Of a stretch of 64,000 bases of DNA, positions 46,413 to 62,492 are shown one piece after another (the stretch's first letter is position 1; every line of letters begins with the position of its first letter). Source of the stretch: Leidyana gryllorum EB-2025a (taxonomy: Eukaryota > Protista > Apicomplexa); NCBI GenBank assembly GCA_048772705.1, contig JBLWGC010000035.1:62001-126000 (forward strand). Direction: 5' to 3'. Position numbers and translations under genes: made by a program. The notes beneath the pieces are model-generated. The model made no database searches, was not told where the DNA came from, and was given only the letters and a program-made list of their open reading frames with translations.

Positions 46413-48026
46413 TCAAAAGACGGGCAATGGAACAGGTAGGGCCGGAGTAGTCGGGGTCACCGCAAAAGTACCCACAGCACCAGCAGCAGGCGGCTGGCAT
46501 TCAGTACCGCTGGCATGGTCACACTCGTAAGTAACAGAGAAGACACAGTCAGCCGGCTCACGAAGGACCTGAATACAGCTATCACCTTGCTGGGCGTAAC
46601 CCGCAGGGCAAACAGGGCGAGCTTGAGCGATGCGAACACATCCGTCCATCTGCTCGTCGAACCCGGATGGACAACTGGTCAGGAAGGCAGCAGCTTCCAA
46701 GGCGACACATTCGCAGGGTCGGCCAGGGAGGCACTCCTTGGTGTAGTCGGGGGGGCACTCTTGGAGAGGAGGGACACGTTGGCGCGCGTAACAGAAAGCG
46801 GCATCTCCTTCTGCGTGGCAGACAGGGATAGGAGCAACTTGTTGGCGCACCAAACATCTATTGCCTTGGAGGGTACCCTCATCACAAGCGAAAATAAGTG
46901 CCGTTGAGGTCACACGAGTGCAGGTCTTCTGGACACTGATAGTAGTCTTGGTTGGTTGGGTAATAACCTTGGGAGCAACAGCGGTAACCTCAGCTTCACA
47001 GGGCAAAGCGCGAGCAGCCACACAAGGCGGGCAGGGCTGCACAGTGCAGGTGACAGAGCAGGCCGTTGCAGCAGCAGTGGCAGCAGCTCCACAATCCTTA
47101 GTGGCAGTCAACTGACGCTTGTGACCGTGAGCGTGGCCATGACCGAAACCGACATGACCTATGTGGCCGTGATGACCGACATCAGTGGCAACCAAAGGCG
47201 CGGCAAGAGCCACAGTCTGAGGTGCAACGGAGAAGGGCGCAAGCTTGGGGAGTTCAGGTAGCATCGGGGTGTGTGAAGTGCAGTCATAAACCTCTTCTTG
47301 CAGGCAGGCACCATCAACAAAAGTGAAACCTTCAGGACAGAAAGCACGAGCTTCAGCGAAAGCTTGAACGGTACAACTGCCTGTACGCGCGTCATACGTT
47401 CCCTCGGGACAAGTAGGGGTCAGAGGATGGGGGACTTGACGGATACACTCGGTATCGCTGGCAGCAAACGTGCCATCCGGACAACGGTTCACAAATGCAG
47501 CGCTGATAATCTTGGCACAGTTACCGTCGCGACGACTGTAACCCAAAGGACAACTCTGCAAGAAAGCTGCTCTCCGTTGACATGAACCTTCAAAGGTCTC
47601 AAATCCGCCAGGACACAGGAACCGAGCTGGCTCCACCAAAGTCTGAACACAAGTCTGACCCTCCAATACAAAACCTGGACGCTTGCAGAAGTACTGAGGG
47701 GCGGTTTGATCCACCACCTTTCCCATACGAGCTGAAGCAACCTTGAACTCTGAACGAGTGGCCATCACAGAAGGAGCCACTGCCACTTGTTGAGTTGCAG
47801 GAAGCTGTACTTGAATCAAGCCATGCTTGTGCAACAGGGGCTTGGGCGCAATCAGAGGTTGAGTGGGGAGAAATTGAGGAATCACAACCTGCTGCGGGAT
47901 ACTCACAGCCCGGGCGACATTTCCGCACGCGGCGCCATGTTTGCAGGACCCACCAAGTCCTCCGTGGTGGTGAAAGGTAGCATCACAAATGGATGTAGTG
48001 ATCAAGATTCCCAAAGCAAGCCTCAT
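46413..48026 (-). CDS. Oocyst wall protein-like secreted Cys-repeat protein, 537 aa
   Basis: Signal peptide; regularly spaced CPxGY/F...C repeats and His-rich segments as in COWP/TgOWP proteins. Confidence 0.82.
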   Translation of the reverse strand: MRLALGILITTSICDATFHHHGGLGGSCKHGAACGNVARAVSIPQQVVIPQFLPTQPLIAPKPLLHKHGLIQVQLPATQQVAVAPSVMATRSEFKVASARMGKVVDQTAPQYFCKRPGFVLEGQTCVQTLVEPARFLCPGGFETFEGSCQRRAAFLQSCPLGYSRRDGNCAKIISAAFVNRCPDGTFAASDTECIRQVPHPLTPTCPEGTYDARTGSCTVQAFAEARAFCPEGFTFVDGACLQEEVYDCTSHTPMLPELPKLAPFSVAPQTVALAAPLVATDVGHHGHIGHVGFGHGHAHGHKRQLTATKDCGAAATAAATACSVTCTVQPCPPCVAARALPCEAEVTAVAPKVITQPTKTTISVQKTCTRVTSTALIFACDEGTLQGNRCLVRQQVAPIPVCHAEGDAAFCYARQRVPPLQECPPDYTKECLPGRPCECVALEAAAFLTSCPSGFDEQMDGCVRIAQARPVCPAGYAQQGDSCIQVLREPADCVFSVTYECDHASGTECQPPAAGAVGTFAVTPTTPALPVPLPVF

Positions 48027-48220
48027 TCTAAGTGATCTGCAATCTCCTCCACTAAGACTTCAAAGACTTGACAAACTCGCGTGGTTCGCTTTTCCCCAGA
48101 AAAAGCTCTACTTACACTCGATGCAAATGCACATGCCTGCAACGCGGTTTTCAAAGAAGAAATAACGCGATATTGCGCGACTCATACACCAAACCGAACA
48201 AACAAACACCATTTTACAAA

Positions 48221-48245
48221 GACACACACACACACACACGTGTGT
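48221..48245. repeat. (CA)n tract ending in an ACACACGTGTGT palindrome, upstream of the OWP-like gene
   Basis: gacacacacacacacacacgtgtgt. Confidence 0.75.
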
Positions 48246-48406
48246 TTAATCGACCAGCGTACATTACATCAATGCATAGTCAAACATGAAATCGAAAGGG
48301 TCAAAGATGTAACCACTTCTGACTTCGCACTTCGAGTACGTCAAAGTGCAACAGTGTACAATTACACTCGTAACACACACCGACTCTGACGTCAACCATT
48401 GACGAC

Positions 48407-49891
48407 TTACGGTTTCAGTCGATTAGAGAGCTCAAGCAACGCTTGACCAAGATGTCCCACCAAGGCTGGTCTTTCGGTTCTGGCAATGGCCTCGACAAAA
48501 TATGTTCCAGGAAACATCTCTTCGTTCATATAGCGTGTCTACATACCCATAAGTAAGGTTGTAACAGCCTTCTAGACCTCTTAGGCTCACCGGATAGAAT
48601 CTTTTGACAGCTACCATGATGTGCCGATTGGTACCCGCATCAATATGATAAATTTGGCCTTTGACATAAATGTCGTTCGGTGGTGCTCGCTGGAAACCCA
48701 TTCCGTCGATGATAGTGACAATACTTGGCGACACTGTGGCTTCTTTGACGCGCCGAGCGTTCGCTGGGAAGCCATTGGGTGCAGCCAAATGCTCAGCACT
48801 GTATATGCGAAGTGCGCTGCAGAGAGGAATCAAAGATATCTGGGGATCCATCGAACTTACAATATGTTCCGCAAGTGTTCGGGTAATAGATATCGACGAA
48901 TCCAAAGCTCCTTTGCCGATTTTGAGTGCGACTGGAGGAAAGAATCTGCAACAGAGAGCATAGTGGGAATCAAAAAACAGCATGCTGTCGCTCACCCTGC
49001 GCTGTGGAGTCAATTCGCCAACACTCGTCCTTCCAGAGTCCTCTTTGGCACACATCACACAGCGACTGTAGCAATTTTAGCAATGCTTGGAGCGCTCGGG
49101 GGCATTCGTTGACATTGACAACGCCCATCATTGTGCACTCTGTATATAAGTATTCTTGGGTGGGCGGCAAGGCTACCCCTCCCATTCTGTAGCTCTCCGC
49201 ACCTCCAAACCGCATATTCCCCTGCATCTGACTACCACAGCTTAGGGGGGACGGTATCGGATCGACGGTTTGCCAGATATCTGTGGCTCCACCCATTCCG
49301 TGGCCTTGTGTCAAAGCGAAGTCCGCCTCGAGCAAACTGATACCCGCGATCAGCCTGGCCGATAAGGGAACGTCCCAGAATGTCTTCTCCTCGTTCTCTA
49401 AGGGTCGCTTGCGACTCTTTTCGTACTCAGCTTCATTTCCAAGGTTCTTCTCCTTCTCGGCCTTCAGCTTCTCCATTAGCTGGTGGAAGTACTGGTTTGG
49501 ACCGCTGCCGGGTGGGCGAGTCGGATGTCCTTGGGGAGGCATGCCACCCTGTGGACTCGGCATTGGGGCTCCTCGAGGGTTCCAACCCGCCCGCGGTGGC
49601 ATAGATTGTGGGCGTTGGAAAAAGGCGGCAGCGTCCGGCCTCACGGGCATATCAGGGGGACGCTTCGCCATTGCTCCTTGTGGACCCCCTTGAGGCCCCA
49701 TAGGACGGAAGTGCTGCGAATTGACGTCCGTTCGAGGCGGTCCTCGAAGAACTGCGGCTCCCTGTTGCTGTGCAGCCGCCTGTTTTGCCATAGCGGCCCT
49801 AATATGGGCAGCTTGATCGTACTGTCCCGGGCGCACAGGCATCGACTGACCCATCGCGGGGGGACCTCCTTGACTGCTGGGACGCATGCCT

Positions 49892-49923
<32 letters not shown>

Positions 49924-50544
49924 CTGTTGCCGCATCATCATGGCAGCGTACTGCTGCTGAGTCATCTGGCCTCCTTCAGGGGGTCGGTGAGGAGGATTGC
50001 CCGGTTGCTGTGACGACAAATATTGGCACGGCTGCTGCTGCGCTGGTTGTGAACTCACCTGTTGCGGCACATTGGGCATATTCTGACCCATTATCTGCGG
50101 GTGTGGGAGGTTTCCACCACTTTGTTGAGCACCCTGTAGATGAGGCGTGTAGTGTGACACCTTTCGCTTTCATTACCGGTGGAGCGCGGCCTCCGAATCC
50201 GGGCTGTTGTATCGAATTGCCTCCCATGGGTGGTCTGTGTGCCGTTGGTGGCGCTCTGTGGGGATTCATCATTTGATGCACCCGCCGCGGATCCATATCC
50301 ATCGGCAAATACTGCTGCTGCGCAGCCGCCTGCCGATATTGTTGGGAAGCTTGAGCTTGTTGCATCTCCTGACCAGTCACCACTGTGTACCGCGGCAGCA
50401 TGATTTACCAGTAACTATCTTATGTGCCTTACCATTCCCAGGACGAGGTTGCTGCTGTTGTTGTTGTTGCTGCTGTTGCTGCTGTTGCTGCTGTTGTTGC
50501 TGCATAGCGAACATCCGCATCTGGGCAGCCTCCCGACTCTCCAT
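48407..50544 (-). CDS. MED18: Mediator subunit MED18-like domain fused to a long polyQ/Pro/Gly/Met-rich N-terminus; introns 50383-50432, 50134-50176, 48946-48995, 48817-48860, 48539-48590; a further short 3' exon is possible
   Basis: Spliced C-terminus ECTMMGVV...LLKLLQSLCD...ELWIRRYL...FALRIYS...ARRVKEATVSPSIVTIIDGMGFQ...YVKGQIYH...IMVAVKRFY...YFVEAIA...LSNRLKP is colinear with Med18 motifs as I recall them. Confidence 0.72.
50449..50500. repeat. CAG/CAA polyglutamine tract (17 Q); a second tract lies at 49891-49929
   Basis: Mixed ttg/ctg triplets on the + strand. Confidence 0.9.
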
Positions 50545-50573: not shown

Positions 50574-52004
50574 TCAATGTTTCTCTGCCAAGTCCAAGCC
50601 CTCAATCAAAGAAGCACTACCATCATTGATCCTTATGTAACTAGGTCGACCACGAATAAGTCTAGGAGGGATAATAGAACTGATGTCATTCGTGAATAGC
50701 GGAAATCCCGGCAACCGTAGCTGGTTGATATATCTTGCAAAGTCTTGCCAAGTCTTCTGATGCTTTATGGGCGAAGAGCGGGCCATCATGGCTTCCGCCA
50801 TCTGCCAGCTACAAACGTCCGATTTGATTGATGCGCTCATTGTACACATCTCCAAGGCCAATGGCCCAGCCACCTTGATGGACGACAAACTACCAACTGG
50901 CCAGCTACTCTCAATGTACTCCACAGCATCGATTCGCATGATCGAACCTTCTTTAAATTCCTGCATGTACAGAATGAGCTGTTTGATGAGCTGATTCTGA
51001 TCCTCATCGTTCGTATTGATTACGTGGACTTTCGAAATGCGCGCGATTGGGTATTCCAATGATCGCACACGTCTGCCTGGAACGACGTTGATGTGCGTTA
51101 AGTAGGCCAGGACGCCAAACAGACGGACACACGCGTCAAGAGGGATCCCGTCAGGAGCTTCGATGCAGTCAGCAGCACCTTTGAGGGCGTGCACCGCATC
51201 GTAGGTATGATATGCGTATCGCTCGCGTGTGTGGTGCGCGCAGACATCGCAGGTTGGTATCTGGATGATCCGTGTGGCGGGTCCGGCGCCTTGTAGTTTG
51301 AGTAGCTCGTGTCTTCGTTTGAGCAGGTTGATCGGGAGTCTGATTTCTCTGAGCTTGGGAAACTTGTGTTGAGCAGGTGGCGAGAAGAAGTACTCTACGA
51401 CCCCTAGTTCTCGATTGCAAACGAAAGGTGTTTCTTTGCGTGGATTATAGGTCGGTCGCTCCAGGTATTTGATGGTGAACGTCTGTAGATTGGGGTACTT
51501 GGTATCCCAGCACCTGAGGGAAGCACCTTGTTGTTCGAGTGCTTGCTGTATGAGTTTACGATGATCATTGTTTCTAGAGGTGCACCCGATCCCTGAGACG
51601 GTGACGTTGAAGGAGGTGATAGTGGGCGCTGCTGTTTGTACAATGGCGAGGGCGTCTAGCAGGGAGATTGGTCTTGGTCTTGTAGCGGCATATTTGGTGG
51701 TTTCGTCTCTGAGTACTTGAGAAAGTAGTCGTTTGTCAACGAAGGATGCCCTGGAGTGGTGATGATGTATGTGGCTTTCTTGATGTTCGAATGTGTGTAA
51801 ATAAGGTAGTGACTTTTGAATGACGGTTTGTATTTGTTGGCTTCCGCTTCTCAATATGCCTCTCCATATGAACGGGTTGGTGGTGAGATGTCGAATGATG
51901 ACATTGGAGGCTAATTGATGGCAGTTTCGATTGAGGCGTCGTAGTTTGAGCCAGGTATCGAAGCCATTACCGAAGTCTACTATGAGCTGCAGCCATGTTA
52001 CCAT
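50574..52004 (-). CDS. Hypothetical protein with F-box-like N-terminus and degenerate LRR-like segments; intronless
   Basis: WLQLIVDF...WLKLRRLNRNCHQLA; YPNLQTFTI, FPKLREIRL. Confidence 0.55.
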   Translation of the reverse strand: MVTWLQLIVDFGNGFDTWLKLRRLNRNCHQLASNVIIRHLTTNPFIWRGILRSGSQQIQTVIQKSLPYLHTFEHQESHIHHHHSRASFVDKRLLSQVLRDETTKYAATRPRPISLLDALAIVQTAAPTITSFNVTVSGIGCTSRNNDHRKLIQQALEQQGASLRCWDTKYPNLQTFTIKYLERPTYNPRKETPFVCNRELGVVEYFFSPPAQHKFPKLREIRLPINLLKRRHELLKLQGAGPATRIIQIPTCDVCAHHTRERYAYHTYDAVHALKGAADCIEAPDGIPLDACVRLFGVLAYLTHINVVPGRRVRSLEYPIARISKVHVINTNDEDQNQLIKQLILYMQEFKEGSIMRIDAVEYIESSWPVGSLSSIKVAGPLALEMCTMSASIKSDVCSWQMAEAMMARSSPIKHQKTWQDFARYINQLRLPGFPLFTNDISSIIPPRLIRGRPSYIRINDGSASLIEGLDLAEKH

Positions 52005-60844: not shown

Positions 60845-62492
60845 ATGAAGAGGGCATTGGGAGTCAAAGCCCACAAAGGGCCTAAGAAAGTTCGTAAACT
60901 TCCTCCCAAACCCCAAGTGGTAGAGCCAGAGTCTGAGTCGGAACCCGAGTCCGAAGTCGAAGTTGAAAAAGAGGATGAAGAAGTAGAATCGCCTCAAAAC
61001 CTCAGTGACTTAGACGACAGTACCACTGAGAGTGACGCTGACTCTGATGATGATGAAGAAGAAGACGATTCCGGGTCATCTGACGGGGAAGATCAATTAA
61101 AGACTGCTCAGCCGGAGGATAGTGAGGGGTCCGAGTCTGATGATGATGAGGAGGATGATATGGAGACTCAAGGACTGGCCGAGTTGAGTGCCCATCAGGA
61201 CGATGAGGGAGACATGTTCACTTCTCTGCCCAACGATCGGGAAGTACTCAAGTCCATGTTGGACCGGTGCCAGGAGTTGACTTCAAAGGGTGCTGACCCC
61301 AAAGCGCGCAAAGGGATGTCCCGCTCTGATGTTTTACAACAGATGGTCGTCATTGCTGCCAAGTACTACGGTTATAATACTCAGCTCGCAGAGTACTTCA
61401 TCAACTTGTTCGGTCCCAAGGAGGCCATTGAATTCTTCGAAGCCAATGATGCTCAAAGACCCGTCACTTTACGTGTGAACGGACTCAAAACTAGACGTCG
61501 TGACCTCGCCCAAGTCCTCATCATGCGTGGAGCAAATGTTGACCCTCTTGGAGACTGGACTAAGGTCGGTCTTTGCGTCAAGGACTCCAACATCCCAGTT
61601 GGTGCCACCCCCGAGTACTTGGCCGGCCACTATATGTTGCAAGCTGCCAGTTCCTTCCTCCCTGTGATCGCTCTCGCTCCCAAACCCGACGAAAGGATTC
61701 TCGATATGGCCGCCGCCCCTGGTGGAAAGAGTACATATCTCGCTCAGATGATGAGAAATTCGGGTGTTCTATATGCCAACGACGCCAGCAAAACCCGTGC
61801 CTACGCTCTGATCGCAAATCTTCATCGATTGGGCATCCGCAATTCAATCGTCCTCAACGAAGATGGCAGAGAGTAAGCCCTTACACACATTCACACTCTC
61901 ATCCATTGCTTTCAATCGCAGACTGGGAAAGTACTTATCCAAACTCGATCGCGTCCTGCTAGATGCTCCATGCACGGGATCCGGAGTCATCGCCAAAGAT
62001 CCAGCTGTCAAAGTCAAGAGAACACCCGAAGATTTTGAGAAGATCTCAGGTCTTCAACGTGAACTCTTGAGAACGGCTGTTGATCTGGTCGATGCTGACT
62101 CAAAAACTGGGGGCTATATCGTCTATTCTACCTGCTCTGTGGCCGTAGAAGAGAACGAATGTGTCATCGTAAGTTGCCAAACACTGCCCACACATATACC
62201 ATTATCTCAGGACTATATTCTCAAAATGCGCAATGTCAAACTCGTTGAATCCGGTATCACCTGCAAGTTCAGAGAGGGACTCTCCACCTACCGAAATTAC
62301 CGATTTGATCCCTCCATGAAGCTCTGCCGACGCTTCTATCCTCACGACCACGATGTCGATGGCTTTTTTGTAGCTAAGCTCAAGAAACTCTCCAATGACA
62401 TCCCACAGGTAGCCAAAAGGGATCGTACACCCACCAATGTCCATGTTCGCGATGCTGGCGAGCCAAAGAAAAAGCTCACCAAAAAGAAGTAA
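60845..62492 (+). CDS. NOP2: 25S rRNA cytosine-C5 methyltransferase NOP2/NSUN1; introns ~61872-61921 and 62169-62210
   Basis: GATPEYLAGHYMLQ, LDMAAAPGGKS, DRVLLDAPCTGSG, VYSTCSV, DGFFVAKLKK. Confidence 0.96.

Follow-up and report, generated by a model that had tools for sequence, protein, structure and literature searches.

A Probable Med18 Subunit of Mediator with a Long Glutamine- and Proline-Rich Extension in the Gregarine Leidyana gryllorum

Introduction

Med18 (Srb5) is a subunit of the head module of the Mediator complex, represented in Pfam by PF09637 and structurally by 2HZM/2HZS, 3C0T, and 7EMF. In yeast and human it pairs with Med20 and with the C-terminal helix of Med8, and together they make up the mobile jaw of the head module; it is normally a compact, ordered protein. 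Med15 (Gal11), a subunit of the tail module, carries polyglutamine (polyQ) tracts in a disordered, activator-binding region. Here we describe a gene of the gregarine apicomplexan Leidyana gryllorum EB-2025a that probably encodes a Med18 ortholog, about two thirds of which is an N-terminal extension. It lies in a 64,000-nucleotide stretch (positions 62,001 to 126,000) of contig JBLWGC010000035.1 in assembly GCA_048772705.1; this whole stretch is referred to as the window, and coordinates are those of the window unless another contig is named.

In a survey of 146 animals, plants, and fungi, Med18 was listed with the subunits that show very little disorder, disordered regions peculiar to certain groups occurring here and there (Nagulapalli et al., PMC4770211). 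It is part of the conserved 17-subunit framework of Mediator, subunits of which are conserved in apicomplexans among other protists (Bourbon, 2008, PMC2475620). In Plasmodium falciparum, Med18 (PF3D7_1213200) was recovered together with PfMed31 by co-immunoprecipitation and mass spectrometry, and conserved tail subunits were undetected in the same study (PMC9088918). The initial annotation of this DNA regarded Mediator as hard to detect in apicomplexans, a view that does not agree with the subunits predicted (PMC2475620) or with the co-immunoprecipitation of PfMed18 (PMC9088918); since Med18 is already known in apicomplexans, its retention in a gregarine is to be expected. Among the papers searched, none mentions gregarines together with the Mediator complex.

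Layout of the Gene and Its Relatives

We read the locus, with good confidence, as a single-copy Med18 ortholog of seven exons encoding a three-part protein of ~639 residues, in which a Q/P-rich region is followed by a conserved linker and a C-terminal Med18-type domain. Its features are as follows.

50433..50544, minus strand: exon 1, with its ATG at 50544, an 18-residue polyQ tract at 50502-50449, and a phase 1 end
50383..50432, minus strand: intron 1, 50 nt, GTAAGG...CACAG
50177..50382, minus strand: exon 2, 206 nt, Q/P/M-rich, predicted from frame and splice signals only
50134..50176, minus strand: intron 2, 43 nt, GT...AG
48996..50133, minus strand: exon 3, 1138 nt, an uninterrupted 379-codon frame
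49891..49929, minus strand: second polyQ tract, 13 residues, from the repeat scan
49609..49641, minus strand: conserved island RPDAAAFFQRP, present in the window protein, P0001, P0002, and P0003
49174..49509, minus strand: linker of ~110 residues with the core KRPLENEEK.FW..PL.ARL.AG..LLEAD, from alignment A11
48112..49152, minus strand: putative Med18-type domain, from late in exon 3 through exon 7
48946..48995, minus strand: intron 3, 50 nt, GT...AG, at a junction that is without a gap in spliced P0002
48861..48945, minus strand: exon 4 (SFLQS...ELWIRRYLLPEHLRNI), 78% identical to P0002
48817..48860, minus strand: intron 4, 44 nt, GT...AG
48591..48816, minus strand: exon 5, with the DGMGF and KGQIY motifs, 68% identical to P0002
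48539..48590, minus strand: intron 5, 52 nt, GT...AG
48411..48538, minus strand: exon 6 (YFVE...RLK and two bases of a Pro codon), from the open reading frame (ORF), splice script, and alignment
48137..48410, minus strand: proposed intron 6, 274 nt, GTAAGT...TTGCAG (AG at 48138-48137), with a GT/CA microsatellite inside
48112..48136, minus strand: proposed exon 7, which finishes the Pro codon and continues with HVHLHRV and a TAA stop

Two relatives came from a word search based on the last part of exon 3: P0002, a protein of 487 residues from the Blabericola migrator transcriptome in EukProt, and P0001, a genomic call on Logan contig L001. Further relatives are P0003 (contig L007), P0005 from Gregarina sp., P0006, P0007 (Trichotokara), P0008 from Porospora cf. 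gigantea B, which is deposited as a "hypothetical protein," and P0009; wherever the source is named, it is a eugregarine. An exhaustive search with profile A2, whose 172 positions cover the linker and the start of the domain and leave the rest of the domain out of reach, matched P0001, P0003, and the repeat artefact P0004 only. Within the eugregarine genome searched (15.5 Mb in 237 contigs), the window gene is the sole locus that matches residues 160-487 of P0002. Length, stops, and composition were counted on the joined window sequence, and single exons or natural database proteins were used for searches and folding.

Identity of the C-Terminal Domain

The C-terminal ~210 residues very probably form a divergent Med18-type domain with a CYTH-like barrel, and not a catalytic CYTH enzyme; the ortholog model supports the assignment to Med18 by structure, and profile comparison supports it marginally. 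The Med18 motifs on which the initial annotation relied (ECTMMG, LQSLCD, DGMGF, KGQIY, YFVE, and RLKP) are each found in translations of the window. When P0002, P0006, and P0007 were compared with the Protein Data Bank (PDB) by phmmer, the matches were of the kind expected by chance, and profile A9 gave none. A10, a gregarine family alignment that includes more distant relatives and has residues 265-487 of P0002 as its first row, was used as a profile against 177,635 distinct PDB sequences and gave four matches below E 10. Three of these are mouse or human MED18 (E 0.65-1.5) and the fourth is a designed coiled coil; marginal in themselves, the MED18 matches are striking for their rank. The MED18 alignment is colinear over profile positions 115-220 and extends to the last residue, with MGF, KG, YLVE, and LKPLVHLEKI pairing with the corresponding gregarine motifs.

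AlphaFold2 (AF2) was run on A10, thus modelling P0002:265-487, and its best model had a predicted local distance difference test score (pLDDT) of 70.5 and a predicted template modelling score (pTM) of 0.64. Against the PDB, Foldseek placed Med18 at ranks 1-20 for this model (E 6.3e-9 to 1.5e-5), with Med20 appearing from 2e-5 and CYTH/TTM proteins from 1e-4. VIA-align against 48,161 chains gave Z 16.9 for human MED18 (7emf_R, root-mean-square deviation 2.5 Å over 173 residues) and Z 13.9 for Schizosaccharomyces pombe Med18 (5n9j_X); Med20 (2hzm_A) reached Z 9.0 and the best CYTH protein (2fjt_A) Z 13.2. By shape, the first cluster in the ESM Atlas was MED18, with template modelling (TM) scores of 0.73/0.69, and CYTH clusters stood at ~0.60; Med20 was not listed. 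By language-model features, PF09637 Med18 clusters scored up to 0.92, Med20 0.83, and CYTH 0.81, and half of the 30 nearest named clusters were PF09637 Med18, sharing 189-193 of the 256 features. The comparison of Med18 with CYTH had been set in the initial annotation as one by which the assignment could be refuted, and Med18 came out ahead in Foldseek, in VIA-align, and in both the shape and the feature comparisons of the Atlas, as judged on the natural ortholog.

ExExK is the signature motif of CYTH enzymes. Across A10 the first strand reads YTECTMMG, YSECSLKG, or FIELSLKA, with one Glu, neither a further Glu nor a Lys being conserved, and the ExExK signature, as read from this alignment, is absent from that strand; a catalytic CYTH enzyme is unlikely for this reason. 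The Pfam CYTH model (PF01928) had no match at E ≤10 in the window exons or in the scanned orthologs.

Fusion of the Extension to the Domain

Exon 3 begins in the Q/P/G/A/M-rich disordered region, continues through the conserved linker, and ends ~55 residues into the Med18 domain; as it is a single uninterrupted frame, no predicted splice is needed for the fusion. That the Q/P-rich region is joined to the domain within one exon had been proposed in the initial annotation, and it is borne out by this frame, by the transcript ORF of P0002, and by the genomic frames of two relatives (P0001 on L001 and P0003 on L007), which are continuous from the Q-rich region into the domain. In P0002, a spliced ORF, the three-part layout of the window gene recurs (Q/P-rich N-terminus, linker, and domain); the window exon pieces are 60-78% identical to P0002 and align without gaps at the window exon junctions. 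P0002 thus gives transcript-level support, in a relative, for the joins between exons 3, 4, 5, and 6 and for the fusion itself. Altogether the frame is open across 275-400 low-complexity residues in four species.

The gene calls P0001 (L001 445-1644) and P0003 (L007 3161-4717) both read into the intron that follows exon 3 and are truncated there. P0009 has a retained intron and stops at the LKP position.

Exon Structure and the 3' End

A script confirmed an open frame from 50544 to 48407 through five GT-AG introns of 43-52 nt, and the six exons so joined comprise 632 codons with compatible phases and no internal stop. The five canonical introns described in the initial annotation as joining the exons of one protein therefore stand as to splice ends, phases, and frame. 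For exons 1 and 2, similarity to relatives is limited to composition; contig L007 has a similar first exon (M..QMxM[YF]xMQQQQ) upstream in the orthologous locus, and P0002 starts likewise. Contig L001 has the exon structure of the window gene. An extra 36-nt intron (L001 1906-1941) divides the equivalent of window exon 5 after GIGF, and the L001 introns measure 34-40 nt against 43-52 nt in the window gene.

The 3' end requires revision. The initial annotation ended the protein at the TAA at 48409-48407, immediately after RLKP, and this stop overlaps a splice donor (CC/GTAAGT). A seventh exon is proposed because the C-termini of relatives and the splice site in L001 place an intron at the position of the window stop: at the equivalent donor, L001 reads CC/GTGAGG, with a 34-nt intron next and then a mini-exon for HVHLLKV and a stop. 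HVHL occurs once in the six frames of the window, in the proposed exon 7, where it is in the correct phase after the AG. HVHLHRV has its parallels in HVHLMKL before the stop of P0002 and P0005 (both ending LEPHVHLMKL) and in LVHLEKI, with which mammalian MED18 terminates. An Rfam scan of the proposed intron 6 gave no matches. The coding sequence thus very likely ends at 48112 in a seven-residue mini-exon, which would bring the gene to seven exons and the protein to ~639 residues.

In Porospora (L006 3716-4084, contig JAHYSF010000642.1), a Q/P-rich ORF with an ATG of its own lies in frame upstream of the annotated start of the homolog KVP17_001328, which may thus be deposited without its full N-terminus, its start placed too far downstream. 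The homolog terminates in ...KLRP, where the relatives have the intron before the last mini-exon; the upstream gene is 540 nt away and leaves space for a short extension only.

The Q/P-Rich Region

The first 313 residues of the window protein contain 21% Q, 13% P, 11.5% A, 10.5% G, 7% R, 7% S, and 6% M, together with 3% N and less than 5% L, I, and V combined, and include an 18-residue and a 13-residue polyQ tract. A region of ~310 residues so rich in Q, P, G, A, and M and so poor in hydrophobic residues is almost certainly disordered. It was called prion-like in the initial annotation, and its composition (13% Pro, 7% Arg, 3% Asn) argues against a classical Q/N prion domain, so that this description is not established.

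PolyQ is rare in this genome and is no genome-wide habit. Runs of at least six CAR codons are confined within the 64-kb window to the two in this gene, and runs of at least 10 were found at no fewer than six loci in the 15.5-Mb genome, two of them in the Med18 gene. The other four long polyQ loci (L008 2774-3382, L009 1721-4852, L010 2224-3189, and L011 2705-4036, on contigs C82, C140, C204, and C211) are an FG-nucleoporin-like ORF, a 1044-codon ORF with a GYF domain, and two ORFs without a Pfam match.

Inside the disordered region, the RPDAAAFFQRP island is the sole conserved part, its surroundings being 52% identical to P0002 over 58 residues (BLASTP, E 1.5e-5). The number of residues before the linker is ~160 in P0002, ~290 in P0003, and ~310 in the window protein. 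The Q-rich character may be older than the Gregarina/Blabericola clade, since Porospora has the in-frame Q/P-rich ORF upstream of its annotated start.

The Conserved Linker

Between the Q/P-rich region and the domain, the linker has 53 invariant columns across four species in A11 and a mean column identity of 75%, compared with an identity to P0002 of 56-60% where the Med18 domain begins. By these alignments, no other part of the protein is as well conserved as the linker in the Gregarina/Blabericola clade. It was detected in the window species and in its three closest relatives (P0001, P0002, and P0003) only; comparison of the linker with Pfam, with the PDB by profile search, and with the ESM Atlas gave no match, and hhalign did not detect it in the N-terminus of the Porospora protein. 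It is probably helical, its helices coming from an AF2 run on linker and domain together (alignment A4) whose low confidence (pLDDT 31.7) makes the model itself unusable. A predicted complex of linker with domain scored 0.00, a value that says nothing either way about binding. The Q/P-rich region and the linker together make up an N-terminal addition of ~420 residues that is a new part of this Med18.

Other Mediator Subunits

Six-frame Pfam scans of the genome recovered Med31, its gene being split into two exon pieces that score 68.6 and 24.4 bits (above the Pfam cut-off; C159:162821-163154, L002/L003), and from this clear Med31 a Mediator complex appears to exist in the organism. A Med6 candidate is borderline at 26.3 bits against a cut-off of 27 (C36:180291-180599, L004), and a Med10 candidate is weak at 20.5 bits against 23.3 (C51:16285-16461, L005). 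Med20, Med7, Med8, Med17, Med22, and Med15_N gave no match in these scans, in which the control genomes were silent too, so that their silence does not speak for absence.

Neighboring Genes

A 476-codon ORF (window 50574-52004, minus strand) occupies another frame upstream, and its stop lies 29 nt from the Med18 ATG; a gap of this size means that the promoter and 5' untranslated region of Med18 overlap the neighboring gene, or that the transcripts overlap. Downstream of Med18 lies a gene for a His-rich protein with Cys repeats (window 46413-48026, minus strand); the same neighbor follows the ortholog in L001 (2367-3857), so that local gene order is conserved.

Weighing of Alternative Explanations

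Several observations weigh against the assignment to Med18 or against the gene model. PF09637 itself had no match at E ≤10 in the window exons, P0001, P0002, or P0005-P0009, and none in the six-frame scan of the genome, where the control genomes were equally silent; in so divergent a family, this bears on detection more than on biology. The support at sequence level is marginal, the best MED18 match standing at E 0.65. One of five AF2 models was confident (pLDDT 70.5, the others ranging from 54 to 32), the alignment behind it is shallow (16 rows, many of them fragments), and the structure modelled is that of the ortholog P0002, 60-78% identical, rather than that of the window protein. CYTH enzymes have this fold too and fall just ~4 Z units short of Med18. 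Med20 and Med8 were undetected in the genome, a result made uninformative by the silence of the controls. As to the gene, exons 1 and 2 and intron 6 are predictions, and the distance between the upstream stop and the Med18 ATG is only 29 nt. On a rival reading, the domain belongs with the CYTH/triphosphate-tunnel enzymes, whether still catalytic or inactive, has no relation to Mediator, and is fused to low-complexity sequence. Such a reading could draw on the class IV adenylyl cyclase 2fjt_A (Z 13.2) and PH1012 (2dc4_B, Z 13.0), on the many TTM enzymes at Foldseek E 1e-4 to 1e-3, on the Atlas CYTH clusters at TM 0.60, and on the silence of the Pfam Med18 model. We find it scarcely credible, given that Foldseek fills ranks 1-20 with Med18 at E-values four to five orders of magnitude better than those of CYTH, that Med18 also comes first in VIA-align and the Atlas, that the sole real profile matches in the PDB are MED18 aligned to the C-terminus, and that the ESM features favor Med18 (0.92 against 0.81) in a domain without ExExK.

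If the domain is taken as Med18, the Q/P-rich part could still be separate from it in vivo, with an internal promoter or start yielding a Med18 of normal size and the upstream frame either untranslated or giving another product. The conservation of exons 1 and 2 in composition only would fit this, as would an ATG just 29 nt past the upstream stop and the shortness of the database proteins of distant gregarines (266 residues in Porospora P0008 and 241 in P0006). Such a separation is nevertheless quite unlikely, because a single exon extends from the Q-rich region through the linker to the opening strands of the fold, the frame is open in four species, and the spliced transcript ORF of Blabericola covers all three parts; moreover, the linker immediately upstream of the domain is the part best conserved at protein level and is certainly translated, and Porospora too has its Q/P-rich ORF in frame upstream of the annotated start. 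More plausible, though still doubtful, is that the fusion is real and the Q/P-rich region has expanded neutrally as low-complexity sequence, with no specific role, so that just the linker and the Med18 domain are of consequence. The region differs widely among species in sequence and in length (from ~160 to ~290 and ~310 residues before the linker), and its polyQ is encoded by pure CAG/CAA repeats, which are prone to slippage. Against neutrality, at least four species retain the Q/P-rich character, as Porospora probably does, the RPDAAAFFQRP island is conserved, and with two of its six long polyQ tracts here, the 15.5-Mb genome is not polyQ-prone. We therefore retain the reading of the locus as one gene for a Med18 with a fused N-terminal extension.

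Proposed Role and Significance

In such a Med18, by extrapolation from yeast and human, Med20 and the Med8 C-terminal helix would be the partners of the C-terminal domain in the mobile jaw of the head, and the N-terminal extension would project from the head as an additional interaction surface of low affinity. Its contacts might include transcription factors, TATA-binding protein (TBP) or RNA polymerase II, or other copies of itself. Eugregarines may, like Plasmodium, be without the Med2/3/15 tail triad, and we entertain as an outside chance that the Q-rich region and the clade-specific helical module acquired by Med18 give a Mediator without a tail the surface by which it contacts activators or forms condensates; the idea of the extension as a replacement for the tail module is speculation. 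A Med18 in which two of the six long polyQ tracts found genome-wide accompany a strongly conserved orphan module is in any case a testable candidate for regulatory input to a reduced Mediator. Since the Pfam model misses the domain and the gene calls are mis-spliced or truncated, inventories of gregarine Mediator that are based on annotation will miss Med18 or shorten it.

Comparison with Known Systems

The nearest functional analogy to the extension is Med15, likewise a Mediator subunit with a docking domain and a long Q-rich disordered region. This likeness is one of analogy only, as Med15 is a different subunit of another module with another fold, and no KIX domain emerged from the Med15_N scan of the genome, in which the controls were silent too. 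With the CYTH/TTM proteins (PF01928) the gregarine domain shares the general barrel fold (Z up to 13.2) and differs in that their structural and feature scores are below those of Med18 and their ExExK motif is absent from it.

PfMed18 and the gregarine protein have phylum and subunit in common. In the ESM Atlas, the closest cluster made up of apicomplexan proteins has a length of ~225 residues, which suggests that the long extension of Med18 is not present outside gregarines. From the Med18 family at large, the gregarine protein is set apart by a divergence too great for the Pfam model and by ~420 extra N-terminal residues, solved Med18 chains being ~190-310 residues in length. It resembles that family in its fold, in its best structural match, and in the colinear motifs of the C-terminal half as far as the LKP.VHL.K[IVL] strand. 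With about two thirds of its length given to an extension that carries polyQ and an orphan conserved module, this Med18 is a new form of a known subunit.

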